64,000 nucleotides of DNA from Lama glama (lineage: Eukaryota). The position numbers and the translations under genes are program-made. The DNA is taken from contig CM052837.1 of NCBI GenBank assembly GCA_028534125.1, forward strand, positions 33,294,001 through 33,358,000. Reading direction: 5' to 3'. The notes under the pieces were generated by a model. That model was not told where the DNA came from. It did not search any database and saw only the letters and a list, made by a program, of their open reading frames with translations. Positions within the stretch are counted from its first letter, which is position 1, and each line of letters opens with the position of its first letter. Positions 13,802 to 56,019 of this stretch are shown here, piece after piece.

Positions 13802-13829
13802 TTCTCCCAGCAAGGGAGATGCAGCAGCG

Positions 13830-14265: not shown

Positions 14266-15114
14266 ATCCTGGAGAGCCACCCGCGGGGACACAGGCGGCT
14301 GTACCATAGGAAAGCGTGAAGCTGCAGCAGTCGCCGGTGCTGGTGGAGCCGGTGCCCCGCCCTGTGCTGTACCCCTGCGGTGTGACCTTCGGTCTTGCCT
14401 CAGCCCGACCACGACCACGTTGGGAGTTCAGTTCATTCCCCATTTAACAGACGCGGTAACTGAGGCCAAGGTCCAGGCAGTGAGGCTCTGGAGAACAAGA
14501 GGGAAACAAACCCAGAGCGGATGTGGCCCGAATCCTGTCCTCTGCAGCGCCTGGTCCCCAGTGGGAGTGACCCAGGCCGCCGCAGCCCAGGGAAGAGCTG
14601 AAACACAGGCCTCGCCTCCAGAAAGGTCCTTCCCCTCCCCCGCTGGGATGTAGCCCAGTTACTCTAGTTGGCCACCCCCCTAAACTCCAGAACAGTGGTT
14701 CTCGCAGCCTAGGTCCCCACAGCCAGCATCCGCAGGACCTGAGAAAACATTAGAAATGGAAATCATGGGTCCCAGCCTAGAACTCCTGGATCAGAAGCTG
14801 GTGGTGGGTCCCAGAGACCCCCGGGGAGACTCTGATGTCAGGTCAGGCTCACAGACCTCTCTCTGCATCTAAAATGTGACATCGTGGCTTCTTTGCTTTC
14901 AGCCTTTGCTCAGCTGGGTATGGCATCTCCCAGGCTCTGGTTAAGTCAGTCATCTTGAGATGAGCCAGCAGTAGGTGCTCAACAAGAATTACTAATAATT
15001 CCTTAAACATTTCCTAACCGCCCACTCTGTGCCTGGGTCTTTGCACAGGACCCCTGCTCCCGCGTGCGCCTAGAGGTCATGTCCAGTGGGGACACCTGTA
15101 AGCAGAGAAGCCCA
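14266..15114 (+). repeat. Arm A of the ~850-bp inverted segmental duplication (RTF2 intron)
   Basis: Reverse complement of 55167-56019. By-eye alignment gives ~33 substitutions and one 4-bp indel (~96%). Confidence 0.95.
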
Positions 15115-15366
15115 ACAGAGAAAATGGGAGGAACCCTTCAGAATCCAAGTTCCCAGACATCAGCTGGGTCCAGACTTGCAGGCAGGCCTGCCATGCTAAC
15201 CTCAGATGGAAACTTGCCCAAGCAGAGCTCGGGCTCAGAAGCTGTCCAGGATGCAGGCGAGAACACAGGAGCTCGAGGACCTGTGGTTGGGCCAAGAGTG
15301 AGGGTCTGAGGGTGGCAGCTTTCCGTGGGGTGACGGAATCTTTCTTCTCTCTTTTTTCCTCTCCAG

Positions 15367-15480
15367 TGCGGGGCTGCCTTCCAGGAGGATGACGTCATCG
15401 TGCTCAATGGCACCAAGGAGGACGTGGAAGTGCTGAAGGGAAGGATGGAGGAGAGAAGGCTTCGAGCGAAGCTGGGAAAG
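15367..15480 (+). CDS. RTF2: RTF2 internal coding exon (CGAAFQEDDVIVLNGTKEDVEVLKGRMEERRLRAKLGK)
   Basis: Long pyrimidine tract ending ctccag|TGC; donor AAG|gtacc; 114 nt, phase 0. Peptide recognised as replication termination factor 2 (RTFDC1/C20orf43). Confidence 0.93.
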
Positions 15481-15981
15481 GTACCAGGGTCCTGGTGTCT
15501 GTCCCTTACCGCCCCGAAGTAAAGTCTTCAGGTCCTGCCCCCCCGCCCCTCCGCCCTGGAGTGATAGCGAACCACACGACTGCGTCACTGGCAGCTGCTT
15601 CGGGGTGTGCAGTGATTGAGGCGGTTTTTATGACCTGGAGGGGCCTGGGCTCTAGAAGCATTCCAGTCTCAGCCCGGCTGCACCTCACTGTGCTGGGCGC
15701 GCACTTCTGCTCTTCTGCTCTTCTTCTCTTCTGCCCTTCTGCGCTCAGCTTCCTTGTCAGGGAGGAGGGGCTGGTGCAGGGGACGCCTGCTGTTAGGACG
15801 GCAGAAAAGTTCACGCCCATAAGTCACGGCCCAGAGCGCAGCCCGAGGGCAGGCGGCCACCAGGACTGCTGATTCTGTGTTGACAACGTGTAAGCCAGAG
15901 GAGGAGTGAAGTCACCATCCCCCTAGCGCGTCTGAGGATCCTGTGCTGACCGGGTTTGCAACACCACACACACACCCCTGT

Positions 15982-16006
15982 TCCCAGAGTGAGGAGCCAG
16001 GCAGCC

Positions 16007-16041
<35 letters not shown>

Positions 16042-16065
16042 CAGAGTGAGGAGCCAAGCAGCCTT
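15982..16065. repeat. (CA)n microsatellite flanked by a 27-bp direct repeat
   Basis: TCCCAGAGTGAGGAGCCA(G/A)GCAGCCTT at 15982-16008 and 16039-16065, with about 14-15 AC units between. Confidence 0.9.
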
Positions 16066-18328
16066 CCCGCTGGTGGGAGCCACCTCCCTGGCCTTCCTGA
16101 GCCCCCCGTGGGCTCCTGGAAGGGAGGCCAGCGAGACGCCCTGGTGCAGGCAGCCAGCTCTGGATGGGTGTGCGGGTGCGAAGGCTCTGTTTTACGCTCC
16201 AGGTTCAGAATCACGTTCCACAAGCAGTGGAGTCAGCGCTTAATGATCTGATGTAACAAGCAGGCTCAAAAGGGTTTATTGGCAAAGAAATCATTCAGTG
16301 TGCCATCGATTCTGGATCCAACAGGAATTTTCATTGTTATTCTTGAGTTTATTGATGATAGCTGTGATCTTCTTTCATTCTTAAAAACAAAAAAATGTTA
16401 GGTTCAGGGTAAATGTGGGAGAAACTTCATGTAATCAGAACTAAGACAAAAGAGTGCTTAAAGTATTAGAAAATTAGTTTCAGTGTCCTGAGGACGTAAA
16501 ATTGTGAAAACAAATAGCCTGACTGTTTTTATGCTACTGGTGTACATTTACCAATGATGTAGTAATTAAAGATTTTTCAGGTTTTTTAAAATCATAATAG
16601 AGGAAAGGGCTGGATCATACCACCCTAGAATAAGAAATAATTCACGGCCATAAGACTTTAAAAAGCTGATGCTTGAGAGTGTCAGATCATACTGTTATTA
16701 TGTATGGGGTTCAGAATTCTCAGAAGGAGCCAAACCATTTGCATTTCCTCCTTTTAGCATTGTGCCTAGGTAGAAAATGAAGAATGCGTGTGAATGGTTC
16801 CATAGTATAAGGAATTGTGCCCAGACTTTGTGATCAAATGCTAGTAGACATATTCTCTGAAGCAGTTTTATACAAGGTCATTACAGCATTCATGAGAAAT
16901 AGTTAAAGAGCCACTCTGTCGTTTTAAAGGGGGAAATTCACGTTTAAAAGCAAACTTATGTGTGTTCATCTAAGCCAGTTTTCTAAGTTACTGCAGTCTC
17001 AGTATCGTACAAGCGGAGAAAAGTTTGAGATGTTTCTGACAAAGGACAGTGTCCAAAAGGGTCTGCTTGTTCTTCGTGGCTCCTGCTGATCAAGTTTAGT
17101 TTTTAAAAAGCACGAAAGGGGAAAACTGTATTTTAAAGGAGGCTCCTGGAGACTGGTGTGTCCTTAACCCTCTTCAGTGAGTTCGCCCCTCAGTCCCAGG
17201 CTTCCTGCCGAGTTTGCAAAGCCCAGTGGAACCAACATGCCCCTCTCTGCGAAATCCTCGCTGGAGCTTCTGGGAACGCCTCGTGGATACTGCTGCCAGG
17301 AGACCAAAATGCTGCCCAAATATACCCGCAGCTGGAAACGGGACATGGCGTTTCCTCTCTGACTCCCTGCTGCACTCACATGAGCCCAGCTGTGAATGGA
17401 TGGCTCGCAGATCAGCAGCGTTCTCTTGTTGTTTTGAAAGATGAGGTCGTGCCCTCACGGATTTGAGTGTGTGTCTTCCGTGTGTGGAATGAGCGGTACT
17501 TGCTGTGTGTTTTGTACAAGCGTTACAGATCATTTTGCATGTGCTTATCACAAGTTCAGGGCCACTGCCTGAGCACAGTCTTGGGTGTTTTCTAGCGATC
17601 GGAGCCTCCTGAAGTCATTAGGGTGTGTGTCTTTAGCACCACCTTTTGCATACTTAGGGAGATGGCGTGTTTAAGTAAACTGAGTGAGCGTAGGCCTATG
17701 TATTCTTGTGACTGAAGTAGCTCTAACATGGCTGTGTGGTTTTAGAATGGGTTAGTTTTATTTCTTAAATTGTTGCTGACCAGTGTAACAATCACGAGTG
17801 ACAGAATTCTAACGGGTAATCCAGAGTCGAGGAGAACTGGCTAACGTGTTCCTTAGCACAGGCCTCAAGTCCTTATAGTTAAATAAACAAATGTAGGATC
17901 AGTTTGAGGATTCTGAAGACGTCTTCCTGGAGTGAGTGAGAGTCAGCACACGTGTGCCCTGGCTGGACTTCGTGTTACCCTCCACTCAGCTGCTCTTTTG
18001 CGTGCGGTAGTCACTGTTTACCCTGGCCGTTACCACTGAAATCTGTCATCTTCGTTTACATTCTTTGAGACTGTGGTTTCTGGAATGTAAGTATACAGCT
18101 GAGCAGATCTCTGCAGATGGATGTTGTATGAGGCAGGAGCGCACAACCGGAGACACGCGGGAAGGACGGGGTTTAGGACTGATGAGTTTCAGAGTCTCCT
18201 TCAGGCCGAGCCCCTGGCCTGAGTGAACTGGATCGGCCTCTTGTTGGGCTCCCGGGACGGCAGGAGCCACACTGACGCCGAAATCCGTGAATCCAAGCAC
18301 ATCTGCACCCTCCTCTTTGTTTTCACAG

Positions 18329-18383
18329 AAAGCAAAGAAACCAAAGGCAGCGGAGTCTGTCTCAAAATCAGATGTCAGTGAAG
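18329..18383 (+). CDS. RTF2: RTF2 coding exon (KAKKPKAAESVSKSDVSE)
   Basis: tttcacag|AAA ... GAAG|gtaaga; 55 nt, in frame with the neighbouring exons. Confidence 0.88.
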
Positions 18384-18490
18384 GTAAGACGCTGAAAGAG
18401 TTCTTTGTTTTAGTAAAATAAGGCCATAGGCCTGCTTCCTAAATGAGTTCCTGGTTTTGTTTTGCTTAGCTTATTCTGTTCCTTTTACAG

Positions 18491-18586
18491 AAACCCCAGG
18501 ACCATCAAAAATTAAGACTGGGAAGCCCGAAGAAACCAGCCTTGATTCTAGAGAGAAGAAAACCAACTCGGCTCCCAAAAGTGCAG
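18491..18586 (+). CDS. RTF2: RTF2 coding exon (ETPGPSKIKTGKPEETSLDSREKKTNSAPKSA)
   Basis: ttttacag|AA ... GCAG|gtggg; 96 nt, phase 1 on both sides. Confidence 0.88.
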
Positions 18587-19567
18587 GTGGGTCCTGCGGA
18601 GACGACAGTGGGTGACGCAGAGGCTGGAAATGCAGGTGGTTAGGGCACCGTTTTATTGGAGTGAATTCGGAAACTCAAGCTCATCCTAATTGTGCCTCTA
18701 AACAGTTGTGTGAGCGCGTTTCAGGGCTAACTGAGAAACAGCTGATACGCCGCAGAGCAGAAGCCCTGTGGGGAGGGGGGCCGGGGTCACGGGTGCTAAC
18801 TGTCCAGTTTCCCTGTGGCGTCTGCACTTGGTGCCAGACTGACAAGGCATGCAGAGACCTGGACTCAGACGTCCTGCAGACGCTGATCAGTGGACTGAGG
18901 CTCGGGGCGTTGGTCAGGGCCGTCCCCCTTCCCTCTGAGGCTGGGGTTCTGTGCGCACCACATGTGGCATCAGAGCCAGCCATCCCTCCACCTGCCTCTT
19001 GACCAAGTATCAGAGAGCCATTTGGCGGTTAGTCCAGAATTTAGTCCATTTCTCCCCGAACTCACTACCTTTAACAAAGAAAATGAATTTATTTCACAAA
19101 GAAGAAAAACATGGATTCATTAGGTAAAGGAAAGTGCAATCTTACGCTGTAAATGTCCTCCACAGTGTTGTGGGTCCCAGTACCCCCTCCACGTAGTAAC
19201 TGCTTGGCCTGGGGTGGGTCACACAGCCTCCTGGCGTCTCTGTTTCCACCCCTGTAAGCAGGCTGAGACCACCCCCCACCCCCAGGGAGATCGGTCTGAT
19301 GTAATCATTCGTGGAGCTGGGACCAGTGCCAAGAACAGAGCAAGCAGTGATTTAGTGTGATTTTAAATGACAGATGTAAGTGTAGTAGCTTCATTTCTTT
19401 TTAGGGAGGGGTGGACGATTGAGGTCACACACTTCAGCACTCATCCCCAGAAAGGAGGAGGGAAATTCCTGGGATTAACAGACTTTTTTCTTCCCTTTGG
19501 AGAAAGTGAGGTTTGAATGACCTGTGGGCCCAACCTTAAAGTTTTTGGCTGTTCATTTTTTTTCTAG

Positions 19568-19746
19568 CAGCAAATGGGAGCTCTTCTGGAAAAGCCGGGA
19601 AGCCTCCGTGTGGAGCGACAAAGAGGTCCATCGCCGACAGTGAGGAGTCGGAAGCTTACAAGTCCCTTTTCACGACTCACAGCTCCGCCAAGCGCTCCAA
19701 GGAGGAGTCAGCCCACTGGGTCACCCACACGTCCTACTGCTTCTGA
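19568..19746 (+). CDS. RTF2: RTF2 last coding exon (...KRSIADSEESEAYKSLFTTHSSAKRSKEESAHWVTHTSYCF*)
   Basis: tttttctag|CA acceptor. The conserved RTF2 C-terminus (YKSLFT...WVTHTSYCF) ends at TGA 19744-19746. Confidence 0.95.
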
Positions 19747-20286
19747 AGCCCGCGCCGCGCCCCCACGAGGGAGGGGCTGTGGCCCTGGGCTGTGCTCTGT
19801 GCGCTCTGCTCCAGCTGCATCTGCACGAGGTCAACCCCCCAAACCTCTGCCGCTGCGGTCAGTCCTGCCTGTGAGGCAGGTGGGGGCCCGCGGTGGCCGT
19901 GCCAGCCCCACCCCATCCCCCTCTCCCTCGGGACCGCGCTCCCTTCCCCCTGCAGGTGCACTTGGACCTTCCCGTGGCCCAGAAAGCGTGTTGGTGGCAC
20001 TATTTATGCTTAAAATAATTAAAGACTCCAGATTGCTCATGGTGTGTGGTCGGCTCATTTTGACTAAAATTCTCATGGTTTTGCTGCCAATGGGTAATTA
20101 ATTAAATAAGCCAAGTGAAACTGAACTGAGAAAGGATGGGTTTCAGGTACACTCTGCCTGCAGGGCCGCGGGAGGGAACGTCTGTGCCAGAGAGGGGTCA
20201 CCGCCTGGGTCGAGTACTTGGTGCCCTTCCCGTGTCATCTGGGTGACAGAGGAGATTGACTGGGGCACCTGATGATTTGGTACAAA

Positions 20287-20292
20287 AATAAA
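20287..20292 (+). terminator. RTF2 polyadenylation signal AATAAA (alternative ATTAAA at 20101-20106)
   Basis: AATAAA ~540 nt after the stop codon, followed by a T/GT-rich downstream element. Confidence 0.6.
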
Positions 20293-23200
20293 GCAAGTCT
20301 GAAGTCTGCCTTTTCTCTCATCTATCTGTGTTTTTCTTCTTTCTTCCACTAATGTTTTGGCAAAAAAAAAAGAAAATTGTAGCCATCACATTGTTAGCGA
20401 CAGGAGTAATCCTGTGACGTCAAGTCAGTTTAACGTCCTCGCAGCAGGAGATAGGATTGTCCATAAAACTGGTGTGTTTTATCCATAAAGTGTGTTGAAA
20501 TCAATAATTAACAAAACTCTCTATGAGACAGTGAATTAAGGACCGACCAGGAACATCCGAGTCTCAGGACTGTCTTCTGGAGACACTTGTATTACTGAGA
20601 TGATCGGCTGGTTCTTTATATCAGAACCCGGGGCTCTGGTGTCCCTTAAAAAGCAGAAACAGGAGCTGAGGGAGGAAGGACGGGGGATGGGGGGCAGGCG
20701 GGGAGGGGGCCAGAGAGTCCGCCCTGCCTGCTCTGAGGGTGTATTGACATGAATATAGAAGCATTTTAATCAGAATTACATTAACAGTGCATTTTTGTTG
20801 TGGACTTGTCCAGAACAAACCAGAATCATCTGTTTTCTTTCCCTAATCAATTTGCTGTACAGCTCAGTTAAACCATTTTCTAGTTGTTGCTTTTCTTCCT
20901 CTTTTTTTGTTGTATTATTTTTGTAACAATTAGTGCCTTTTTAACCTGGTTAACATTGTTTTTTACCACCCTGAGTTTTCTACTTTAATTTTATGAAGAA
21001 AACTTGATACATCAGGCCTTTTAGTCGAATGTTACTAATTACACCCTCAGCCATCATGAGGTGATTATTGTTATTTTAAGGCCATTATTTGTACCAACTT
21101 CAGTTTTCTCCATTTTAGCGTTAATCAGTTTTATCTTGCATTGATTATTATTATTTTTTTGCATTGGTTAGTTTGACTTTGTCCAGTTTTTTCTTGTGAC
21201 CCAGCCACAGTGTCCAGCCCTGCCTGTCCTCAAGGTCACATCCACGCTATGCACCCTCCCTCCCGCTCTCCTGTGCCTCTTCCAGCCGGTGCCCCACCCG
21301 GTTACCACCTGCCTCTGGCTTCTCCCTCCCTGAGCCCTTCCCCACTGAGGGAACCCTCCAGCCTAGGAGAGAAAGCCTTGCTTTGGAGAGTGCTTCCAGC
21401 CTCTCATATTTAGTGGGACATCGTGACCTCTGAGGCGTGAGGGGCAGCGCTTACCCCGCTCAAGGGGGGACAGTGTCTGCTCTGCGACTCCCCGCGAGGG
21501 CTGGAGAGCAAGGCGAGAAGGGCTCCTAGCAGTGCCTGATGCTCCACGGAGGACCTGAGCCCTGGGGGCTTCCTCTCACAGGCCTCACAGCCACCAAGAA
21601 GACTGAGGTGGCTGTCCTGCCTCACGGGGGTGACAGCCGAGGCTCAGAGCAGTAGGTGAGATGCTCACGTGCCGGCAGCTCATGTGTCCGGTCGGGACTC
21701 CGGGTGGACTCCCGTGAATACCTGACAGGTGGATAAAGCCCAGAAGCGGTGGGAGGCGTCCCCGCAGGACACCGAGGCCAGGGTTGCAGGAGCGCTGCCG
21801 GCCCTCCCTCCTCCGGGCCACCAGGATCCCCGCCCGCTCTGCCAGCAGCGACGGAGCTGGCAGGAGATCTCCACGTGCTGGCCATCATGTCCTTTATCCC
21901 CAAGAAACGGAAGTCTCCCCAAAATGGACTGAGAAGATGGTCACTCAACTCACAGAACTATTACTACCTTTTGACCCAGAGAGAATTTCAGGTTGAAGAT
22001 CTTCCTAGACTTACCTGGTTTTCTGCTGGTCCTCTTCTGTTGAGAAGTGCTTTAGACTTGAACACAATGCAAGCCAAGAAGACGCGACTCCTGTTGTTAA
22101 ACACACCCCAGCATTTCCACGTAAGGGAAACCGGGTGGGACAAAGCTCTCTGAGCGCCAGATTGTTTGGGGTCACTTATGTAAATCAAGGGAGTCTTTTG
22201 GCCCCTGAGTGCATCACACTGTCCCCACCGAACTCTAGAGCACTATTTGGAGGAGTTGACTTAATGCAGGGTCCATACAGACATGAGGCACCTCAGATTA
22301 CCCTGCAGTGGTTGCCCAGGGCAACAGGACCGACTTCCACAGGAGCCATGTGAGGCTGATCAGGGGAGACTGGGGACAGAGTGTGATTTCAAGGAGGAGA
22401 CCCTGAAGGGCTCAAGATACAACCCCCCACCCTCTTCAGGCATCTGGGAGGGCCCTGTCCCCATGGGCTTCCCCCTTTCCTGCGCGCTCTCTCCCTGACT
22501 CATTTGTTAAGATCAAACTTGAATAGAACTACAAGTTTAATATGAAAAAAAAAAAAGATACACCCCCCCCCGCCCCTTCCCCAGTGGGCAACTCTTAATA
22601 GTAACCCCTCAGGATGAGTGCATTGGTTTAACTATCTATATTCTTCCTTCTAAAAATTTTTTATTGTGATATAATCGACATTGTATAAGTTTCAGTTGGT
22701 GTATATTGTGAAATGATCACCATTTACATGTGACAAGTCTGGTTATAATAGCAGTACCCGTTTCCTAGTCAACCCCTTGGTCTTGCCCCTCCTTAGCCCT
22801 GCCCAGATGGTCTCAGCAGGGAGCCCCCGCCCCGAAGCTGTGGGAGTGTCTGTACCTGGTCTCCGCTCTCAATCCTCCCCTTCTGGTTTTAAATCGTCTT
22901 ACAGAACTTCTCTGTTGCTCAGCATGGTTCGAGGGGACCCTTCATTATATTCAGAACATTTTATCCTAGGGAATCAGGGTCAATCAGATGACCCAGCGGA
23001 ACAACTACATACCCGTGTTCCGTTAATTGGGACTTTTTTGTTTCATGTCATTTTTAGAAAGTGATGGTTTCAAAGGCATTGGCCAGTGAGCCCTGGCTTT
23101 ATTCCTGGCATCTGCCTCGGTTGTCAGACAGTCTGTGTCCCTCTTGCCTCCGAGTCTTCACACCAGCCTAGAGGTCAGCCCCCTCCCAGCTCCTGATCAT

Positions 23201-23903: not shown

Positions 23904-23991
23904 CCAGCGGCCCAGCCCCAGGTCCCCCGTCTCCAGGTGCCAGGGCCAACAAGCCCACCATGAGCAGCTTCCTCCCCCATCTGTGCTCACC

Positions 23992-24240
23992 ATGCGGACG
24001 CTGAAATGGTTCTTGTTCTTGCCTCTGTGCCTCTCCTGCGGCTGTGCCTTTATGTTTTCTTCTCTGAGAGATAAAGCCAAAGAACCCCAGGGGAAGGTGC
24101 CTTGCGGGGGGCACTTTCGAATTAGGCAGAATCTACCAGAGCATGCCCAAGGCTGGCTTGGGAGCAAGTGGCTCTGGCTTTTTTTTGTTGTTGTGCTATA
24201 TGTGATACTGAAGTTTCGAGGAGATAGTGAGAAGAGTAAG
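23992..24240 (+). CDS. FAM209: FAM209 exon 1 ([24 protein letters not shown]...[24 protein letters not shown]): signal peptide plus TM helix
   Basis: caccATG start; hydrophobic N-terminus and TM segment typical of FAM209A/B; donor AAG|gtaagg at 24240/24241. Confidence 0.93.
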
Positions 24241-24829
24241 GTAAGGATGGCTCCGTTTTTTTTACACGTTTACGTTGGTTCCATCTCAGAAATCTCAGAC
24301 TCAGAGAAAGGATGTTCTTGTTGTAGGCAGGACTGTTACGTGTAATGAATTCAGAGACAGAGTCCCTAGGTCATGGTCCTGAGAAAGGTTCCCGACATAT
24401 CCTTAGGGAAGACAGGAGACCTTAACCCACAGAGGTTGGGACTAATAGTTGAAGACCCACTTCCATTTATTTGGGGAATAAAACCTTGGCTCAATATTTA
24501 TCCTGTTAAAGCAGTTTTTTTCAAATGGAGGTTAGATTAAGAAATTGGTGTGCTTCAGGTCAAGATTATTCACAGAGCCAGATTCACCACCCCGCTTTTT
24601 AATTTCCCTAGTGTTTGACTTATTGCAAGTTGCTGAACTGAATGGAAATGGCATCATTTTCCTTAGGGAAGGGAAAGACCTGTCGTAAAGGGGCAGAGGT
24701 GTAAAGAAGTAACGGCTGGCCCGTGAAGTGGCTGAACAACTCTCAGAAGGGGCAGGGAGAGAGGCACCACGGCATGTTCACTCTAGACAGACCCGACCCT
24801 TCGGAAGATTGTGTCCAGACTGACGGGAG

Positions 24830-41215: not shown

Positions 41216-43519
41216 AGTGCAGTTAGCAGAGAAAAAAACATGCTTTTCCCTTTTAGATGCTCTTCATTTTTCCTCCCTAATACTTTTTTCTTCTTTTTGG
41301 GAAGTTAAGATTTCCCCAAAGAATATCTTCAACTAGCTCTTGCTTTGACCCAAAATGATTTTAATTAAAATAATGGTTAAAAAAAAAAAAAAAAAAGACC
41401 GGCAGTCCCTGAAATTCTGTCCTGAGAAGAAGGGGCTTGGTGATGTGCTTGAAAGGTGGGGGATTGTCTTGGAGCAGAGTCTTCTTAGAAAGCACACTGC
41501 TTTTATTTTGATTGTACCCTTACTTGGACTGCCTGGATATGGGGGTGCTGGTGGAGACTGGAGGCGGGGAGATAGCCCCTGATAACAGCCCAACATGATG
41601 CAGCGCGTATGATGGTTTTTTTGACCTTCACACGTAGACACTCATTTCAGCGTCATTACAAGCCCACGAGGCAGGTCCCTTGCAGACTTCCTGAGCTTGC
41701 ACAAATGGCAGGAGTCAGACGGCCTCGGTGCCGTCCTGCCTCCCTGCCTCCCGAGAGGCTCAGGGTCTGACCCAGCGGCTGCCTGGCTGGGCGAGCTTTG
41801 GCGGCTCCCTTCTTGGCTCCCCAGCCCTAGAACACGGGCTATGCTAGAGCTGTTGGGAAGCGCTGAAAGCAGGTGACTTTGGGGCTCCGCTGAGGAAAGT
41901 TGTGATGGTTCTGCTGACCCAGGGCTGGAGCGGGCCTGGTGCCGAGGTTCGGTTTTCGCTGCCTCTCCAGCCTGGGCCGGGTGGGGGCCCAGGTTCCGTG
42001 CCAGGGAGCGGCCGCCAGTGCCCCGGCCTGCGCTCTGCTCCGCCATATGTGGAAGGATGGATGAGTCACTCTGGAAGCTTCTCCCCTTAAAACGCCTGAA
42101 TCTTCCTCCTTTGCTCCCCTTTCTCTCTGCTCCCCCCCTTCCTCCTCCCTCCCCTCCCTCTTTTTCCTTTAAATGCTCAAAGTCAGTTGATGCCTTTTCA
42201 TAAGAACCTAACTAAGCAGGACAGGCAGCCTGAGCCCAGGCAGGAGGAAGGGAGGATTAAGGCCCTTTGTCATGTTCTCATCTTCTCTGCAGAGACAAGA
42301 CCTGAAGGATTGCTAAAGAATTCCCTTGGAAACAACTTTCTCCAGGGCCTCGTTTGGATGGCCCTGGCTGGGTGGGGCTCCCACAGCTGGGCCAGCAGCC
42401 CTCACGGGGAGGGAGCGCGGGCTGCCAACCTTGCCGCGGGGGAGCAGGCTGTGCACACTGGGTTGGGTCTCCATTCTGGGGCCAGGTCGACTCATCTCTG
42501 GGGCCAGTTGCTTCAGACCTCAGAGACAAGCCGCATCCTGCCAAGAAATGCCTGCTCCCCAATTCTAGTGCCCAAGGGTGTGGTCCTGTGGTCACCCCAG
42601 CCCGCCCCTCCCTGGGTCCCCTTTTCCTCCATTTCTCCTGGTTTGCGGAGGAACATACAATCTGCTCTTCTGACTTAAGGGCTGCCCCCCCACCCCTTGC
42701 TCCAGGTCCCACTCTTTGTGACCTCCTCAAAGATTTCAAGTCATTAATTAACCTCTCCATCTCCTGAAACTTCCATCTCTCTCCCCTCTTGCATCTCTGG
42801 CCTCTGTCTTCCCCGCACAGCGTCCACCCTTATTTATGTTTTTCTTTACAGAAACTTTTCTACTCTCTCTGTCTCTGTTTCTTCAATTCCCACCCATTCT
42901 CCAGCCCCCCTCCATCCGGCTCTGGCCACCCCCTGATTTCTCTCTTGCCAAGGGCGCCAGCCACCACGTCGTGCTGTACAAAGGACCCATTCTCACCCTC
43001 ATTTATGAGGCCTCTATCTGCACTGGACACAGCTGATCACTGTCTTCTTCCATAAACTCTCCTCGCTTTCCTTCTGTGACACACACGTGGTTTTCTCACC
43101 TCCCCCCCCCCCACTCCTTCTGAGCCTTCGTCTTGGGCTCTCTCCTTCCTGGCCTCTAACTGCTGGGTTCCGCAAGGCTGGCCCTGGTCCTCTTCACAGC
43201 TGGACTCTCGCGGGATGATCTCACCCATCTCTGTGGCTTTGAACATGATCTAGGGGCTGAGGACTCCCTCATTGACACCTCCTGTCTTGGTGTCACCTCA
43301 CGGATCTGTCGCCTACCTGACACCCCATGTGAATGTCTCTTGGGCGTTCCACACTTACCATGTGCTGGTCTCCCCCGTCGGTTTCCTCTCCAAGAATGGT
43401 ACCTCTGTTCAACCCAGATGCCCAAGCTTCCTCCTTGCATCTCTCATTCACTTCCCCAACCCTCCCCCCAAGTCAGCCACCAGCTGTCAATTCTGCCCCC
43501 AGATGCCCCTCAGATCCCA

Positions 43520-43965
43520 CTTTTTTTTAAATTGAAGTACAGTTAGTTACAATGTGTCCATTTCTGGTGTACAGCATAATGTCCCAGTCATGCATATGCA
43601 TACATAGATTCATTTTCGTATTCTTTCTCATTAAAGGTATTACAAGATATTGAACCTAGTTCCCTGTGCTGTATAGAAGAAACTTTTTTAAAATCTATGT
43701 TTTATATATAGTGGCTAAAATTTGTAAATTCTCAAACTCCCAAATTTATCCCTTCCCACTCGCTTTCCCCAGTAACCGTAAGATTGTTTACTATGTCTGT
43801 GAGTCTGTTTCTGTTTTGTAGACGAGTTCATAGTAGTGTCCTTTTTTTTCTTTTCTTTTCTTTTTTTAGATTCCACATATGACTGATACCATATGATATT
43901 TTTCTTTTTCTTTCTGGCTTACCTCACTTAGAATGACAATCTCCAGGTCCATCCTTGTTACTGCA
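43520..43965 (-). mobile_element. Young L1 3' end
   Basis: ttttttaaattgaagtacag...tagattccacatat...cttagaatgacaatctccaggtccatc, then Ns. Confidence 0.85.
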
Positions 43966-45682
43966 NNNNNNNNNNNNNNNNNNNNNNNNNNNNNNNNNNN
44001 NNNNNNNNNNNNNNNNNNNNNNNNNNNNNNNNNNNNNNNNNNNNNNNNNNNNNNNNNNNNNNNNNNNNNNNNNNNNNNNNNNNNNNNNNNNNNNNNNNNT
44101 TTCACCCTACTTTGTCACCCTAGGCCAGGCCACCATCAACCCTCTCCCAGATGACATAACGGTCTCCTGGGTAATCCTCAGACATTGTTCCTCACACAGC
44201 TGCCCCTGAGATCTTTCTAAAACAAAACTCTAGTCAGGTCAGCCCCTGCTTGAAACTATTTCATGCTCCCTAATGCTCTGAGGCAAAGTCTAACCTCCTT
44301 AATTCAGACCCTTCAGAGCCTGGCCCCTCCCTGCCTCTCCTGACTCCAGAGCCGCCACCTACCCATGACACCACCCCCCCTCCAGGTGAATTCTGTGTCA
44401 CAGATATGCTGATGGGCTCTCGGGTTCTGGAATATTCTTTCCACTCCAGGCCTTTGCACTTGCTGCTGCCTTCTTGGACTACCCTTCCCTACCCTACTCC
44501 CCGTTTCTGTCTAGCTCTTAACTTCTGTCCTTGGCTTGACTTAGACTATCACTTCCTCCAGGAAGCCCTCCTTGACTCATCCTCCCCAAACAAAACAAAG
44601 ACCAAAAAACTGAGTCATAAGCAACTTTCTTCCCTGAGGAGGGGTCAGGAAAGCTGTGTTTGCATAACCGCTTTTACTTGCCTTCTTTCTTACAGGTTAA
44701 TAGAAATGGGATAAGGAGAGCATCTAAGTATAAACAATTGCATAGCACTAGATAAACACAAGCTTTTACCTGATATGTGACTGATGTGATTAGCTGATTG
44801 GGACAGATCATCAGAAAATGAAATAAAAACCGAGACTTGATTAATAAGATGTGCACTTTGCTCACATAAAAAGATGCTTAACTAGGTTTTATAGAAAGCA
44901 AGCTTTTTTCATCCAAATGGGTGATCTGTTTTGCCAGTGGCAGATCATAGAACTGGCTTCTGCCTTTCACATGTCAAATCATAACACCATCTTCTGGAAT
45001 TATAAACGCATCCACGGCTAATTTTGTTCTGTTCATGTTATAATGATCATTATTGTCCCTTCGGATGGCTTAAGAGCTCTAATGGGGGAGGGGGCTGGCT
45101 ATAGCATATTTTGGCACACTTTGGCCTCACTATTAGTTGTATTCCAAGTGTTGGGGTCCTAGGAGGAGCTGGATCAATAGTGATGAATGAACAAGTAAAC
45201 GAATGAATGAATCACTCTCAAACCCAGGTTCCAGGTTTCACGTTATTGGCCTCCAGTGGTTAATTTCAGCACACGCACAAGACCAGGCGTGGCTTCTACT
45301 CTCGGAATCGTGGAGCCATGGCAGGGTTCCTGGAGCTCCCACGGCCCTTCTCCGAATGTATCAGTTGAGCTGGCTAAGCCATCGAACCCAGCAGGCAGGC
45401 TGCAGGCAGGATGGAAGAAAGCGTAGCGGAGTGTGCAGGGGCCAGTTCATACCTGGCTTTGTGGATTTTATTCTCAGTACAGTGAGAAGCCCTTGCGGAA
45501 TTGATCACCTGATCTGATTTCCATTTTGTTTGCTTTGCTTTAAAAAAAAAAAAAAGGTCACTGCAAATCTCTGGAAAGCCAGATCCAGGACTGGATAGAG
45601 AAAGGGAGGTATGAGTGTGTAAACCCACGACTGTGACACCCAATGAGCCCCGCCCCACCCTCAATGGCAATGCCTAGAGGCA

Positions 45683-45716
45683 GAACGCCATCTTGTGGTC
45701 AACCCTAGGAACTGCA
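45683..45716 (-). promoter_or_regulatory. CTCF site with upstream motif, reverse orientation
   Basis: Reverse complement reads TGCAGTTCC-N6-TGACCACAAGATGGCGTTC. Confidence 0.72.
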
Positions 45717-47159
45717 CCCTCCCATTTTAGTGTCTGGCGCTCCATGCAGGTGATGGGGCCAGGATTCGGACCCCAGTGAGTTGTCCTACCAGAGTCTGGG
45801 ATCTCAAAGCCTATGTTCAAGTCTGGTTTGACCACTCCCAGCCATATGGCCAAGGAGGATTCAGGTTTCTTATCTGAATCGTGAAGACAGCAACGCTCTC
45901 ATTCCTCCAGGTAGAGCCCTAGTGAGAAACGAGACTGTCACTGTCACAGGCTTTTGTAAGCTTTCCTGCATGTGGTTGATAGGTATTGCTTTCCAGGGAG
46001 TGAAATTAAAACGTCTTTCCTCGGTGTTACCTTAAAACAAGAACGTAAGATGCCTGGGTGGTTCACATGTTTAGCACTGGAAGGGATCTGGGGGTCATTA
46101 GATGTGACTTTTTTATTTCAAAGAGGCAGAAACTGAGACTCAGGGAGAAAAGAAGCCTTGGGCTCTTCAGGGGGAGTTTATAAAGAGGTGGTGAGGAGGG
46201 CCATTGTCTCCCAAGAGGGCCATCTTCGAGTTTAGCTCTTCTCTGTGACCTGGAGCAAAGCAATCCCCCCCCTCCCCCACTGCTTTGTGAAAAATGAAGT
46301 AAAGGACACAAAATGGCAGGCGTAAGGCTCCTGCCTCTGGCCTGACACACAATCAGGGCCCAAGTAAAGGCACTTTCTCCGCTGGTCCCACCCAGCCCTC
46401 AGCTTCTCGCTACCCCCACCCAGACGCCTCCAAGGATGGGAAGGAATGGCGTGTGAATGCCCCTGGGGAGCCTTCTTTCTCCCTTAACAGCATACCCGTG
46501 GGAAGAGGCGTAGGGACATCCCTTGCTGGAAATACCCCAGCTCCCTGAGGGGTGACAGCCACCCCATCATTGAATGGAGAACAAAATGTGTGCCCCAGGA
46601 GTCCTGGGAGAGCCTGGGGAGTGGGTGGGGCTGGGGGCAGACCCCCCAACAGAGGCGGGTCCCAAACCTGAGCTGTTTGGTAGGCTGGCCTTCCCAGAGC
46701 CAGGCCACCTGGTGTCCACTCACAGCCCAGGTCTCGGGTCACCCTTGCCACAGTGTCCTCCACCCTATGGACAGGAAAGTCCCAGTTTGACTCTGCCGTT
46801 GATTCTGTGTTTCCTTCTATGTGTTTCTAACTAAGCCTGGGGATCAGAAATAGCAGGAATCCTTTGCAGATTGCAGACTGGACCTGGGAGGAGGGTTCTC
46901 AAAGGATGAACAAATGAGGGGATGACGTGATGGTGAATCTGGGTATTTTCTTTCTGGGTCCACGGTCTCTAAGTTCCTTGGGATCAGGGGTCATCTTTTC
47001 TTTCCCACAGCACCTCGTGTCTGTCTTGGGCCGATTGTCCATCTCAGGTCCAGCTGGAGGTCTTTGTAGGGCCCAGGGATTCATATTTCACTTAGTGCCA
47101 CCCCACAAACTAGAAATCACTTTAAAATGCACCCCCTGCACACATTAAAAATATGTTCT

Positions 47160-48505
47160 GTGGGGTTGCAGCCATTATGGAAAACTGTATATAGCTTCCT
47201 CATATAACTAAAAATACATTCACTGTATGATCCAGCAATCCCACTCCTGGGCATATATTCAGAGGGAACTCAAATTCAAAAAGATANNNNNNNNNNNNNN
47301 NNNNNNNNNNNNNNNNNNNNNNNNNNNNNNNNNNNNNNNNNNNNNNNNNNNNNNNNNNNNNNNNNNNNNNNNNNNNNNNNNNNNNNNNNNNNNNNNNNNN
47401 NNNNNNNNNNNNNNNNNNNNNNNNNNNNNNNNNNNNNNNNNNNNNNNNNNNNNNNNNNNNNNNNNNNNNNNNNNNNNNAAAGTAAGCCAGAAAGAGAAAG
47501 AAAAATACCATATGAGATCACTCATATGTGGAATCTAAAAAAAAAAAAAGGAGCATAAATACAAACCAGAAACAGACTCATAGACGTAGAATACAAACTT
47601 ATGGTTGCCAAGGGGGAGGGGGTGGGAAGGGACAGACTGGGATTTCAAAATGTAGACTAGATAAACAAGATTATACTGTATAGCACAGGGAAATACATAC
47701 AAGATCTTGTGGTCGCTCACAGCGAAAAAAATGTGACAATGAACATATATGTATGTTCATGNNNNNNNNNNNNNNNNNNNNNNNNNNNNNNNNNNNNNNN
47801 NNNNNNNNNNNNNNNNNNNNNNNNNNNNNNNNNNNNNNNNNNNNNNNNNNNNNNNNNNNNNNNNNNNNNNNNNNNNNNNNNNNNNNNNNNNNNNNNNNNN
47901 NNNNNNNNNNNNNNNNNNNNNNNNNNNNNNNNNNNNNNNNNNNNNNNNNNNNNNNNNNNNNNNNNNNNNNNNNNNNNNNNNNNNNNNNNNNNNNNNNNNN
48001 NNNNNNNNNNNNNNNNNNNNNNNNNNNNNNNNNNNNNNNNNNNNNNNNNNNNNNNNNNNNNNNNNNNNNNNNNNNNNNNNNNNNNNNNNNNNNNNNNNNN
48101 NNNNNNNNNNNNNNNNNNNNNNNNNNNNNNNNNNNNNNNNNNNNNNNNNNNNNNNNNNNNNNNNNNNNNNNNNNNNNNNNNNNNNNNNNNNNNNNNNNNN
48201 NNNNNNNNNNNNNNNNNNNNNNNNNNNNNNNNNNNNNNNNNNNNNNNNNNNNNNNNNNNNNGGGGGGGGAAGGGCTGGGAAGGAATAAATTGGGAGTTCG
48301 AGATTTGCAAATACTAACCACTAAATATAAAATAGATAAAAAACAAATTACCTCTGTATAGCACAAGGGAGCTATATTCAATATCTTGTAGTAACCTATA
48401 ATGAAAACGAATATGGAAACAAATACATGTATGTATATGTATGACTGAAGCATTATGCTGCATACCACAGATTGACACCTTGTAACTGACTATATATACT
48501 TCATG
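47160..48505 (+). mobile_element. Two tandem young L1 3' ends, partly hidden by Ns
   Basis: atgatccagcaatcccactcctgggcatata and atatgtggaatctaaaa. A second 3' end starts at 48262 (ggaaggaataaattgggagttcgagatttgc). Confidence 0.8.
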
Positions 48506-48709
48506 TTTTCTGTGGTATAAATGAAAAGATATTTAATAGCTGAGTTTTGCCAGGAAGAAATTGTTCCCTTCATCCTTGTGATATAAATGTCATTATGTTT
48601 ATGTGCAGAGTTATGATCATGTGCTATGTAAAGAAAACCCCAAATAGCCTATATGTTTGGAAATTTAAAGACAAACCTGTAAATAATTCATGAGTGAAAG
48701 AGGAAGGGA

Positions 48710-51994: not shown

Positions 51995-52240
51995 TGGCCA
52001 AAGTTTCTCATTCTCGGAATTGCTGGCATATGGGGCAAGATACCTCTCGGTGGTGGGGCGAGGGCTGGCGTCCTATATTCTGTTCAGATGTTCAGCTGCA
52101 TCCCTGACCTCTGCCCATCAGGTTCCTGTAGTTAACACCACTGCCCCCTCCCCTTCCCCTCAGTGTAACAACCCGACTCCAGACGTTGCCCAATGTTCCC
52201 TGGGGGCAAAATCTCTCCCAGCCCCAACGCTGGCTGAGAG
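51995..52240. mobile_element. MER20-like hAT element
   Basis: gatgttcagctgcatccctgacctctgcccatcag...ccagacgttgcccaatgttccctgggggcaaaatc. Confidence 0.6.
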
Positions 52241-53208
52241 CTCCTGGACTTGGTTTATCTCTGTTCAGATCTTGAAATCTTCCTGATTGGCATCTCCTGA
52301 GCTGGGGGAATTGCTAACATCTCCCCCTTTCACCCTCAAAAACACTCTGTCTGATAAACCATGTGGTCACCCTGGCTCTGAGCCTTCTCCCCCCAGAAAT
52401 GCTTGTGGCATCATCACCCTGAGTTATGGCGTCCAGTCCCTTGGGTGATGAAGGTATAAATATCTACTCATAACTGACGCTAACTGTGAGCCTCAGTCAG
52501 AAGTATCTTCAGCTAAATTGCCACCTTGACTGAAATCTGGGCACCTGTCACTCTTATTTCCATGGTCCACTTGTATTTTTCAACTTTCCCTAAGACCAGT
52601 GTAAAACTGGAATGGACGAAACACTGTAAGGTATTTGAATGAAGTTTTTCTGAGGATTTCAGCCAGTTCTAGATTTTTGCGCTTTAACATACATATTTTT
52701 TCCGGGCTCTGAGCGCTGCTAGAGAGTGCAGTTTCCTTGCAGTTCTCTGGGTACTCCTGATGTGTCTCTGGCCCCTGGCAATTTTCCTCTCTCCACCCTG
52801 CGCATACATGGAGCTCCACCAATGCCCAGGTTTTTGTTGAGTTCCACAGGGGGCTGCGTGGAGGGTTAAGAGAAAGACCCCAGGCCCTGAAGACCAACAG
52901 ATCCGCTTTCTATTTTGAAATTGACATCTCCAGGCACGGCGACCTCAGAAAAGCTAACTGACTTCTCTCGGCCTCATCTGCCCACTTTACAGATGGGAAA
53001 CCAATGCCTGATTCACTGGATTATTTTAAAGATGAGAACAGAATTCATTCAGTGAATCTTTTTAGGCTCCTTGATTGTATCAACAGATGCCAAAAAGACA
53101 TTTGAGAAAATTCCATATCGTTTCAAGCTTAACAAACTAAAAACCTTTTTTCTGTAAGAACAATTGAACCTGATGAAGGATATCTGCCACAAGTCTATAG
53201 AAAGCACC

Positions 53209-53337
53209 TTTTTTTTTTTTTTTTGGTGGGGGAGGTAATTAGATTTATTTCTTTACTTTTAGATGAGGTACTGGGGATTGAACCAGGACCTCATGCATGC
53301 TAAGCATGCGCTCTACCACTGAGCTCTACCCTCCCCC
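53209..53337 (-). mobile_element. tRNA-derived SINE (camelid Vic-1-like)
   Basis: Poly(T), then gggaggtaattag...ggtactggggattgaaccaggacc...taccactgagctctaccctcccc. TSD-like gaaagca on both sides. Confidence 0.8.
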
Positions 53338-53379
53338 TTGGAAAGCATTCTTCATAGTGACACTGTTTCACTGAAATTA

Positions 53380-54810
53380 GGAATAAGACAAAACTCCCCC
53401 ATTACTACTTGTACTCAACACTGCTCCGGTGGTCCTGGCCAGTGGCCAGGGACTATCTTTCTGTGGTGTTTTACATTGATTTATTTGGATCATGAGCGTG
53501 TCCTTTTTTAAAATAATTAAAAACCAATTATTTTTATTAAAAATTTGACCAAACATAACAAGCAAAGGCATGAAAGGAAAGAAACACAAACATCACTCTT
53601 CAGTGATAACATAACTGAATACAGCAAAAATCCAAGAGATTCAACAAACCTTTACAACAAATAAAGCGGTTGAGTAAGATTACTGAAAAAACCATTAATA
53701 TTTTAAAAATCAATAAGGGTTTCCAAACACAAGGAAATAAGAATTAAGCATATAGTTAAAATAATGATATAATATATAATAGCAACAAAAATGATTAGGA
53801 ATACATCTAATTAAAAACATGAAAAAGTTTTTGGAGAAATGTATAGTCCTTTGCTAAAAAACCTAAAGGAAGTTTAACATAGAGGTCAGTTTTCCTCAAA
53901 ATAGTCTCTGAAGTCAAGGGAAGCCAATAAAAAATATGTTAGAAAATTGGTCCAAAACTTGGCAAGGATGACTTTAAATGTGTAAGTTCTCTATGGATTT
54001 TAGACTCCAGTCTGGATTTTAGACTTTGGAATTTTGCTACTTTGTAAAAGACCAAGAAGGGTCAGTATAATTTTGCAAAATAAAACAAGAGAAGTCATAT
54101 CTTTTTTTCTTAAATTCTTTTTTTAGTGGGGGATATATTTAGATTCACTTACTTAGTTTTAGAGGCGGTACAGGGGATTGAACCCAGGACCTTCTGTATG
54201 CTCAGTATGTGCTCCACCACTACCCAAGAGAGGGCATATCTTAAAAGATTTTAAACTTCCCCTGAAGCTGTGTGCTAAGTACCACAGGTGGTGCCAGACG
54301 AATGTACTAGGAAGGAGCTGAGAGGAGGCGTGCCCTTCCACAGCAGCGTGCACACTACCAGGGTGAACAGACACCTTGATCTGGCGGAAATGGATTAATT
54401 GACAGCTGGTTCTGGGAATGTCACTGTCACAAGAAGACAAATTAGGTTCCTGTTATTAGATATTTCGTAAAATAAATTTTAGATGGATTAAAAAACCAAA
54501 TAAGAAAATGCAGCACTGAAAACCTCCAGAAGAAAACAGAAAATATCATGGTATCCGGGTGAGGAAGGATTCTTAATCAAGACAAAAATAACAAGGTCAA
54601 AGAAAATGTTGATGCATTTAATTGCATGGTGTCTTATGGCAAAAAACCAAGATACTCAATGTGAAGAAGCCGTAATACGTGCAGTGCTTCAGAATACAGG
54701 ATATAAATACTAGAAATTGAGGAGAAAAAAAAATCAAGCAAAGAGCAGTAGAAAGAAAAACAGACAAAAGATATGAACCAGCAATTTACAGAAAAGGAAA
54801 CCCAGATGAG
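53380..54810 (+). mobile_element. Highly degraded L1ME ORF2 fragments
   Basis: A-rich, with segments aggaataagacaa, tagatggattaaa and aaagatatgaaccagcaatttacagaaaaggaaa. Confidence 0.5.
54105..54222 (-). mobile_element. tRNA-derived SINE, diverged
   Basis: ggtacaggggattgaacccaggacc...tgctcagtatgtgctccaccact; catatctt flanks both sides. Confidence 0.65.
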
Positions 54811-55166
54811 GGGGCCGTTTGTTTTGCAAATTAATGAAGTATTTCAAAATTTAAAAATAATATGTAAAAATTAAGAGATGAATGGCCAGGAGAATAGAAA
54901 AATTAACTCTGCTTTCTGCCCTTCTGTCCTGTTCTCACTTGTTTTCTGGGCCATGCCTGTGTCTTATTTTTATCATTAAAAACTAGTTCTTTTTAACGGT
55001 GCATAAGTGTAAATATATTAGCATAAGTACTTCGGGCCAGTGGGAATTGTAAACTTACATCTCCTGCTGGATATGGGGTTCCATACTGAACCCCAATTTT
55101 TGGTCCCTCCACCTCAGTTGGACTCAGCAAGAGTCAAGATCCCACCATCAGAGCTGGGGTCCGGAG

Positions 55167-56019
55167 TGGGCTTCTCTGCTTACAGGTGTCCCCACTGGAC
55201 GTGACCTCAAGGCGCACGTGGGAGCGGGGGCCCCGTACAAAGACCCAGGCACAGAATGGGCGGTTGGGAAATGTTTGTTTAAGGAATTATTAGTAATTCT
55301 TGTTGAGCACCTACTGCTGGCTCATCTCAAGATGACTGACTTAATCAGAGCCTGGGAGATGCCACACTCAGCTGAGCAAAGGCTGAAAGCGAAGAAGCCA
55401 CGATGTCACATTTTAGATGCAGAGAGAGGTCTGTGAGCCTGACCTGACATCAGAGTCTCCCCGGGGGTCTCTGGGACCCACCGCCAGCTTCTGATCCAGG
55501 AGTTCTAGGCTGGGACCCATGATTTCCATTTCTAATGTTTTCTCAGGTCCTGCGGATGCTGGCTGTGGGGACCCAGGCTGCGAGAACCACTGTTCTGGAG
55601 TTTAGGGGGGTGGCCAACTAGAGTAACTGGGCTACATCCCAGCGGGGGAGGGGAAGGACCTTTCTGGAGGCGAGGCCTGTGTTTCAGCTCTTCCCTGGGC
55701 TGCGGCGGCCTGGGTCACTCCCACTGGGGACCCGGCCCTGCTGAGGACAGGATCCGGGCCACATCCGCTCTGGGTTTGTTTCCTTCTTGTTCTCCAGAGC
55801 CTCACTGCCTGGACCTTGGCCTCAGTTACCGCGTCTGTTAAATGGGAAATGAACTGAACTCCCAATGTGGTCGTGGTCTGGTTGAAGCAAGAATGAAGGT
55901 CACACCGCAGGGGTACAGCACAGCGCTGGGCACCGGCTCCGCCAGCACCGGCGACTGCTGCAGCTTCATGCTTTCCTGTGGTACAGCCGCCTGTGTCCCC
56001 GCAGGTGGCTCTCCAGGAT
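55167..56019 (-). repeat. Arm B of the ~850-bp inverted segmental duplication (intergenic)
   Basis: Matches 14266-15114 in reverse. ORF-track peptides 14249..14653(+) and 55632..55865(-) are also near-identical. Confidence 0.95.

Follow-up and report, generated by a model that had tools for sequence, protein, structure and literature searches.

A short duplicated unit with a probably homogenised core, in inverted orientation around FAM209 in the llama scaffold

The stretch of Lama glama DNA analysed here (hereafter the window, 64,000 nucleotides of contig CM052837.1) holds, as the scaffold stands, a small inverted duplication with a probably homogenised core, which is real and ordinary for a mammal genome and an event of a known kind. 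The two copies are unevenly alike, and in independent samples from close relatives their outer parts occur as two sequence types and their core as one, with limits that appear to differ from relative to relative. Taken together, these observations fit interlocus gene conversion better than they fit heterogeneous mutation rates, constraint or misassembly, and we consider it likely that part of an RTF2 intron was duplicated at the DNA level, that the copies diverged and that their middle was then converted.

Positions 14263-15114 of the window align with the reverse complement of 55167-56022 over 852 columns at 96.0% identity, with 34 substitutions (26 transitions and 8 transversions) and one 4-bp indel. 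An earlier note, made by eye, had described a reverse-complementary pair of about 850 bp at 14266-15114 and 55167-56019, and the pair is confirmed with these slightly wider ends, inverted as the scaffold stands. The repeat search reports it as two pairs (14263-15009/55276-56022, 747 nt, 97%; 15005-15114/55167-55276, 110 nt, 92%), which are one unit divided by the 4-bp indel; MAFFT with flanks and blastn (word size 9) both give one alignment of 14263-15114 with 56022-55167 (856 columns, 95.6% with gap columns counted, E=0.0) and find no homology past either arm end. The arms and the coding exons near them are the following.

14263 to 15114, forward strand: arm A, 852 bp, intronic in an RTF2-like gene, GC 0.58 in surroundings of GC 0.49-0.60.
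55167 to 56022, reverse strand: arm B, 856 bp, reverse complement of arm A, GC 0.56-0.59 between flanks of GC 0.40 and 0.35.
55277 to 55280, reverse strand: the 4-bp indel, four additional letters in arm B and the sole length difference between the arms in the MAFFT alignment.
15358 to 15480, forward strand: RTF2-like coding exon, matching Pfam PF04641 Rtf2 (E=3.3e-09, profile positions 151-187 of 258).
23983 to 24345, forward strand: first coding exon of FAM209, matching PF15206 (E=2.2e-38), inside the interval between the arms.

Arm A, which is probably the source copy, arm B being the derived one, ends 243 bp upstream of the exon matching Rtf2; the borders of this exon look splice-site-like by eye, and it lies just within the interval between the arms. 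No third copy of the unit was found by blastn (word size 9) within the 64-kb window. A bigger decayed duplication surrounding the arms was rejected, as the same search with 9000-21000 and 52000-59000 returned only the 856-column match and unrelated L1-like repeats, and a tie to a duplication of the FAM209 gene was ruled out by tblastn, which gave a single FAM209 exon-1 match in the window and no second copy. Segmental duplications are usually taken to be 1 kb or longer and 90% or more identical; with sharp ends, a length of 852/856 bp and 96% likeness, the arm pair is a low-copy duplication below the length threshold of that definition.

The identity is unevenly distributed, and the by-eye account of it was right almost to the base (about 18 substitutions had been counted from 14266 in the part where we count 19, the extra one lying at 14265). 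Along the unit the substitutions between the arms number 19, 2, 4, 0 and 9: 19 in 14263-14552, two in a core, four to the right of it (at 14894, 14917, 14920 and 14940), none in the 64 identical bases of 14941-15004 and, after the 4-bp indel, nine in 15015-15080. The core is present in both arms.

14553 to 14893, forward strand: low-divergence core of arm A, 341 bp, with two substitutions against arm B, at 14711 and 14802.
55392 to 55732, reverse strand: low-divergence core of arm B, counterpart of 14553 to 14893.

The 341-bp core carries 2 mismatches against 32 in the remaining 511 columns. A scan statistic placed the best segment at columns 291-630, with 2 mismatches observed and 13.5 expected (11.2 when CpG-weighted), and a permutation that corrects for the choice of segment found the clustering significant against a uniform rate, with p=0.0015, or p=0.017 when stratified by CpG, both on two sequences only. 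The longest run of identity between the arms is 158 bp (p=0.028).

A duplication without any exchange could also look uneven through heterogeneity of the mutation rate, by CpG decay in CpG-richer outer parts together with chance. CpG-associated sites do account for 16 of the 34 mismatches on 76 sites (21% against 2.3% elsewhere), the CpG observed/expected ratio is 0.64 in the left part and 0.28 in the core, about half of the left part's excess divergence is CpG decay, and the CpG correction is what lifts the permutation p above its uniform value; the counts made by eye therefore overstate the contrast, and the statistical support for clustering after stratification is moderate. The contrast nevertheless holds in the stratified scan and at non-CpG sites, where divergence is 17/453 outside the core and 1/323 inside it (Fisher p=0.0011), which bears out the proposal that the duplication is older than the identity of its core implies. 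Moreover, rate heterogeneity leaves unexplained the clusters of differences found in one relative and absent from another (55680-55715 in run X9 and 55345-55391 in run X6, described below), and we regard it as an unlikely explanation.

The relatives were represented by Logan contigs from four public runs (X1, X6, X9 and X15) of four coded organisms and four studies; such contigs can demonstrate that a sequence is present but not that it is missing. Among the matches listed, 20 of 24 runs (eight studies, coded organisms A-D) contain a fraction of 0.82 or more of the words sampled from arm B and its flanks. In the contigs of the four runs the outer parts form two sequence types and the core one, which may partly consist of merged variants. 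At 55171-55305, three of the four runs hold one contig with 0-1 differences and a second with exactly the nine substitutions and the 4-bp deletion of arm A, the arm-A form of the indel (aligned at 55272) being found in contigs of X1, X9 and X15; at 55733-55784 both types are present in all four runs. A single contig spans 55276-55732 in X1 and X15, 55276-55679 in X9 and 55430-55732 in X6. The depth of this core contig against the summed depth of the two types is 24.6 against 24.4 in X9, 21.8 against 22.5-27.7 in X15 and 12.6 against 11.6-13.3 in X6; in X1 it is 46, below the sum of 56.6-77.3. The 14 differences in 55847-56020 appear in none of the four runs because no arm-A-type contig lies over that part.

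The limits of the stretch where the types coincide appear to differ among these very close relatives. At 55680, 55681, 55711 and 55715, all identical between the arms of the window, X9 shows two types; as point mutations, four changes within 36 bp would have a probability of about 4e-7, given flanks that differ at 0-1 of about 1630 bp, and such an origin is not plausible. Positions 55345, 55365, 55368 and 55391 have two types in X6 and in the window and one type in X1, X9 and X15, in contigs that cannot prove absence. Differing limits are what recent and repeated conversion predicts, and they suggest that the exchange was partly recent and involved more than one event. An empty site for arm B was also considered in the relatives and gave no credible joint: two joints, 54770->56078 in X15 (one contig with a side of 21 letters, landing in a repeat of 10^6 depth) and 55794->56062 (a side of 22), are more likely repeat chimeras than forms without the arm; since both sides are below the 30-letter guidance, these joints were set aside.

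Near identity of the core could alternatively come from purifying selection in both copies, again with no exchange, if the core were a functional element such as an enhancer, a boundary element or an RNA. The core is contiguous, arm A is near an RTF2 exon, and 463 bp upstream of this arm, at 13786, there is a CTCF-like site. However, neither arm contains a CTCF-like motif at up to one mismatch from the consensus, and the two matches in the window (13786 and 30173) are within chance, two being reached in 16 of 100 shuffles; the two Rfam matches on the arm are both far below the gathering score (21.3 bits against 82), and the longest open reading frame of the arm (134 aa, 14249-14653) gave no Pfam domain. 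On these grounds a paired CTCF or boundary element and an undetected gene for an RNA or a protein within the arm were rejected, and the earlier suggestion of a duplicated regulatory element is not borne out. Furthermore, close relatives tolerate clusters of four type differences inside the identical stretch of the window, and the core resembles by eye what we take to be old interspersed-repeat relics. Selection on the core is in our view improbable, and the pair presumably has no function of its own. Where the earlier note spoke of a core maintained by gene conversion, recent and repeated conversion agrees with the clustering and with the differing limits, and maintenance in the sense of a function is not supported.

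Misplaced reads in a gapped short-read assembly could have created one of the arms or the near-identical core. The window has six N runs, five of which lie in the spacer and not in the arms, in the following stretch.

39278 to 48261, no strand: the part of the spacer with five N runs (39278-39438, 39452-39598, 43966-44099, 47287-47478 and 47762-48261), solely through which the contigs of arm A and arm B are joined.

Every one of these N runs is bordered, on one side or both, by a copy of a single dispersed L1-like repeat; at 47762-48261 the two sides correspond to one and the same part of it, and this gap is therefore not simply one interrupted element. The inverted orientation and the spacing of about 40 kb are statements of the scaffold that rest on the joins across these five runs. 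Three arm-A letters of the window are also absent or unusual in the relatives, those at 55483 and 55742 occurring in none of the four runs and that at 55574 only in X9, where it is the sole letter. Against an artefact, the contigs of all four runs, each from a different study and coded organism, contain both arm-A-type sequence and arm B together with its junctions: on the right side the junction is bridged in all four, and the left-flank contig enters the arm by 30 letters in three, the bridging rule being 31 letters. In addition, arms that are 4% apart and have unrelated flanks are unlike collapsed or duplicated haplotigs. We hold an assembly artefact to be very improbable.

The poly(A) end of an L1-like 3' end at 56060-56294 is 40 bp away from arm B, as might be expected if the arms were two members of an unannotated transposable element, a retrocopy or an L1 3' transduction. 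A search for many dispersed copies, however, gave no more than two sequence types with a likeness of 90% or above in the contigs of the four runs, with a summed depth of 1-4x that of the flank against 10^3-10^6x in the adjacent L1-like repeat. Neither arm end carries a poly(A), the 60-bp outside flanks of arm B have in common no direct word of at least 6 letters that could be a target-site duplication, and the flank of arm A has no similarity to the 40 bp or to the L1 beside arm B. The unit is thus not a transposon copy, as the earlier note had argued from its mosaic of unique sequence and putative MIR-, MER5- and L2-like relics, and an origin of this kind is extremely unlikely.

We therefore return to duplication followed by conversion. 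In the history that we propose, an 852-bp stretch of the RTF2 intron, arm A, would have been copied at the DNA level into AT-rich and L1-rich DNA downstream of FAM209, neither by retrotransposition nor by transposon insertion, giving arm B, which the scaffold shows reversed. The copies would then have accumulated a divergence of about 4% at non-CpG sites and about 6% over all sites, and later at least one non-crossover exchange, that is interlocus gene conversion, may have overwritten about 340-460 bp in the middle and brought it to near identity. With neutral rates of 1-2.2e-9 per site per year, the duplication would have a rough age of 9-19 My when non-CpG sites are used or 15-33 My when all are, and the core one of about 0.7-3 My. 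A tract of 340-460 bp is in line with mammalian conversion tracts, which PMC3961182 gives as a few hundred base pairs, rarely above 1 kb. A crossover between the inverted arms would flip the interval with the RTF2 exon at 15358-15480 and FAM209 and sever RTF2, which may be why only non-crossover products are seen.

A bolder version, in which the arms exchange both ways in living populations, the tract limits differ in each of the four relatives and 40-kb flips perhaps give a segregating inversion, seems distinctly unlikely. If such an inversion does segregate, at least one coding exon of RTF2, with the later RTF2 exons, and FAM209 would be parted from the rest of RTF2, and the locus would offer, in a non-model mammal, a compact natural system for the ratio of non-crossovers to crossovers between short inverted repeats. 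The wider significance is otherwise small: the locus illustrates cleanly and on a small scale a process for which a genome-wide human map exists. Annotators should expect short reads to be misplaced in the shared core of about 340-460 bp, 465 bp upstream of the RTF2 exon, and variant calls in it to mix both copies; arms truly inverted on one molecule would be a candidate substrate for a 40-kb inversion disrupting RTF2. Confirmation that the tract limits vary from one close relative to another would place conversion within the time since those populations diverged.

Among the matches listed in the literature for FAM209 or RTF2 with inverted repeats or gene conversion, none names FAM209, those naming RTF2 concern yeast replication or repair, and the locus may still be described. 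Known systems offer three comparisons. According to PMC10172114 and PMC4467073, interlocus conversion in human segmental duplications also involves paralogous intrachromosomal stretches (intrachromosomal pairs being favoured, PMC4467073), with a contiguous tract far more alike than the rest and with tract variation among individuals or close relatives, which the contigs suggest here; the long-read human map, which used 1-kbp windows, has a mean tract of 6.26 kbp, however, and the llama tract measures a few hundred bp. The repeats flanking polymorphic human inversions, as described in PMC3961182 (inversions of 5.1-226 kb), are likewise inverted and tens of kb apart, here on the basis of the scaffold; for example, the 7-kb inverted duplications of HsInv0209, which are 94% identical, contain a 782-bp region of 99.9% identity, so that a small, nearly identical block again lies inside arms that are only moderately alike overall. 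The llama arms are about 8 times shorter, and an inversion between them would probably sever RTF2. Finally, the palindromes of the Y chromosome have arms that are far longer, more than 99.9% alike throughout and separated by short spacers, whereas the llama pair is alike to that degree in its core at most, with outer parts at about 93-94% and a spacer of 40 kb in the scaffold. These palindromes, too, have inverted arms, homogenised by gene conversion (PMC3723533).

A repeat search of the whole window returned two adjoining inverted pairs:

14263-15009 with 55276-56022, inverted, 747 nt, 97% identity
15005-15114 with 55167-55276, inverted, 110 nt, 92% identity

Alignment with 160-190 bp of flank per side shows that both pairs belong to a single unit with sharp ends, with no similarity between the loci outside 14263 and 15114. 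We call its copies arm A (14263-15114, plus strand) and arm B (55167-56022, minus strand). When the surroundings of arm A (12 kb) and of arm B (7 kb) were compared with the window by blastn (word size 9), one arm-arm match was obtained (856 columns, 95.6% with gap columns counted, E=0.0), and no further window match involved either arm. The remaining matches close to arm B are dispersed copies of an L1-like 3' end, and a direct-repeat search found the same repeat family only. The arms differ by 34 substitutions (26 transitions and 8 transversions) and one 4-bp indel in a column-wise count, which bears out the coordinates and mismatch counts of the earlier note to within one substitution and confirms its observation of a duplication with uneven identity.

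Mismatches between arm A and arm B along the unit
First stretch, 290 columns, 19 mismatches
Core (14553-14893 in arm A, 55392-55732 in arm B), 341 columns, 2 mismatches
Third stretch, 49 columns, 4 mismatches
Fourth stretch, 62 columns, 0 mismatches
Fifth stretch, 110 columns, 9 mismatches

A scan statistic, in which the best low-divergence segment was sought over all starts and ends and the mismatch positions were then permuted, selected columns 291-630 (2 mismatches vs 13.5 expected, p=0.0015). At 158 bp, the longest stretch of identity between the arms has p=0.028. The CpG observed/expected ratio is 0.64 in the outer left part vs 0.28 in the core, and 76 CpG-associated sites carry 16 of the 34 mismatches, so that part of the core contrast is CpG decay. 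A CpG-stratified scan, with CpG and non-CpG mismatches permuted within their own class and the expectation weighted by class rate, again picked columns 291-630 (2 vs 11.2 expected, p=0.017). At non-CpG sites the core has 1 mismatch in 323 and the rest 17 in 453 (Fisher p=0.0011, uncorrected for the choice of segment). The clustering is real, on two-sequence evidence that is moderate.

Independent samples also carry the duplication. Between 0.82 and 0.95 of the sampled words of 54600-56600 (arm B and flanks) were present in 20 of the 24 listed runs, belonging to 8 studies and four organisms. Contigs of one public run per organism (X1, X9, X6 and X15, from four studies) were aligned to 54300-56900 at 90% likeness. 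No run differs from the window at more than one site of the unique flank (0-1 in about 1630 bp), and the organisms are therefore very close relatives of the window's. The right junction of arm B (56022/56023) is bridged in all four runs, by contigs from 55817 to 56071-56089. On the left, the flank contig (54300-55196) extends 30 letters into arm B, the bridging rule being 31, and ends where the sequence becomes common to arm A; no listed contig of X6 reaches this junction.

Two types of contig, with the letters of arm A or of arm B, occur on both sides of the core. At 55171-55305, X1, X9 and X15 each have one contig with 0-1 differences from the window and a second with 9 substitutions and a 4-letter deletion, exactly the arm A letters; X6 has four of the nine substitutions, near contig ends. 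At 55703-55820 both types are present in all four runs (55733, 55737, 55754, 55784). Between these zones a single contig is found: 55276-55732 in X1 and X15 (457 bp, 0 differences), 55276-55679 in X9 and 55430-55732 in X6. In X9, X15 and X6 the core contig is about as deep as both type-specific contigs together; in X1 its depth is 46, below the sum of the types (56.6-77.3). Summed over contigs, depth is 1-4 times that of the flank in the arm and reaches 10^3-10^6 times in the neighbouring L1-like repeat. The duplication is present in independent data, with two types outside the core and one type within it, and the arm sequence is not a high-copy element.

Run contigs demonstrate presence, not absence. 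No run showed any of the 14 differences in 55847-56020, where only a B-type contig aligned, or the window's arm A letters at 55483 and 55742 (arm A 14802 and 14543). For the latter two, private variation in the assembled individual, merging of variants in contigs, or assembly error may be the cause. At 55574 the arm A letter is the sole letter in X9 and the arm B letter is found in X1, X6 and X15; because contigs may merge variants, this is not readable as a polymorphism common to both arms.

The limits of the homogenised tract appear to differ among the relatives, on two observations of letters that are present. The B-type contig of X9 (depth 13.1) has four further differences from the window, at 55680, 55681, 55711 and 55715, which are without counterpart in its A-type contig (depth 11.3) and at which the window's arms are identical. 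As point mutations, four transitions within 36 bp are not plausible (about 4e-7), given at most 1 difference in about 1630 bp of flank, and we read the cluster as unconverted ancestral divergence. At 55345, 55365, 55368 and 55391 the two types differ in X6, as in the window, and one type is seen in the contigs of X1, X9 and X15. This is most simply read as conversion tracts, fixed or segregating, whose extent differs between close relatives, and it implies more than one conversion event, some of them recent. Such differing limits speak against mutation-rate heterogeneity, and the tolerated difference clusters speak against constraint on the core. Further differences are an adjacent double substitution at 55325/55326 (B-type contig) and one at 55429, both private to X6, and one at 55790 that X6 and X15 carry on their A-type contig. 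At 55209 a third letter occurs in X9 and X6. The arm is thus clearly more diverse than the flanks, as is reported for human duplications (PMC10172114).

The spacer between the arms contains five N runs, which separate the arm A contig (ending at 39277) from the arm B contig (48262-63761). Each of them, like every N run of the window, adjoins a member of one dispersed repeat family, which by eye is L1 3'-end-like:

Dispersed repeat copies: 38885-39277, 43523-43954, 47480-47756, 48264-48525, 56060-56294, 58415-58598, 59452-59539, 63662-63761

Summed contig depths over this repeat at 56040-56300 are 10^3-10^6 in all four runs; evidently it caused the gaps. Both sides of the N run at 47762-48261 cover one and the same part of it and so do not demonstrate continuity across that run. 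A 13-bp island of read letters between two N runs (39439-39451) is of the kind that gap-closing leaves in short-read scaffolds; support for the local order in 39-48 kb is weak. The inverted orientation and the 40 kb distance depend on the scaffold, unlike the duplication and its homogenised core.

Three coding features were recognised around the arms:

4260-5297, minus strand, Branch-domain ORF of 345 aa (PF02485, E=2.9e-42, profile positions 1-207 of 250)
15358-15480, plus strand, RTF2-like exon (Pfam Rtf2 positions 151-187 of 258, E=3.3e-09; splice-like borders)
23983-24345, plus strand, FAM209 exon 1 (PF15206, E=2.2e-38)

From the Rtf2 match and the splice-like borders, arm A, which ends 243 bp upstream of the exon, is intronic in the RTF2-like gene (plus strand). 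The Branch (core-2/I-branching enzyme) ORF, presumably GCNT7-like by human gene order, lies antisense inside this gene, and the end of the domain is absent from this ORF. Arm B is located about 31 kb past exon 1 of FAM209, which is single-copy within the window. The CpG island of the earlier note is probably a GC-rich block at 31001-33000 (GC 0.62 and 0.57), in which both strands have several long ORFs that overlap.

Arm B (GC 0.53-0.59 over three parts) is set between GC-poor flanks (0.40 and 0.35), and GC around arm A is 0.49-0.60; this weak compositional argument makes arm A the likelier source copy. An L1-like element has its poly(A) end 40 bp from arm B. No poly(A) run was found at either end of arm B, nor any direct word of at least 6 letters common to its 60-bp outside flanks. 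The copy was therefore made from DNA and not through retroposition, with templated break repair and replication template switching as candidate processes.

The suggestion that the arms are a duplicated regulatory element found no support. Neither arm has a CTCF-like motif (consensus search, at most 1 mismatch), and the window's two matches (13786, 30173) do not exceed chance, 16 of 100 shuffles reaching 2. Rfam gave only two matches, far below threshold, and no Pfam domain was found in the 134-aa ORF of arm A; the motif, Rfam and Pfam searches thus gave no sign of function for the arm pair. Should the arms indeed be inverted, crossing-over between them would flip the interval with RTF2 exon 15358-15480 and FAM209 and sever RTF2, which would account for the persistence of non-crossover products only.

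Segmental duplications are usually defined from 1 kb, and the arm unit, at 852 bp, is below this size. Gene conversion is the best explanation of its homogenised core, and a probable one. Interlocus gene conversion is well documented for duplicates that lie close together. Intrachromosomal copies are favoured (PMC4467073), human duplications are widely affected (PMC10172114), and mammalian tracts mostly span a few hundred bp (PMC3961182). The locus would be a small new example of this known kind of event. The same mosaic, on a larger scale, is described in PMC3961182, where an inverted 7-kb pair of 94% identity contains a 782-bp block of 99.9% identity.
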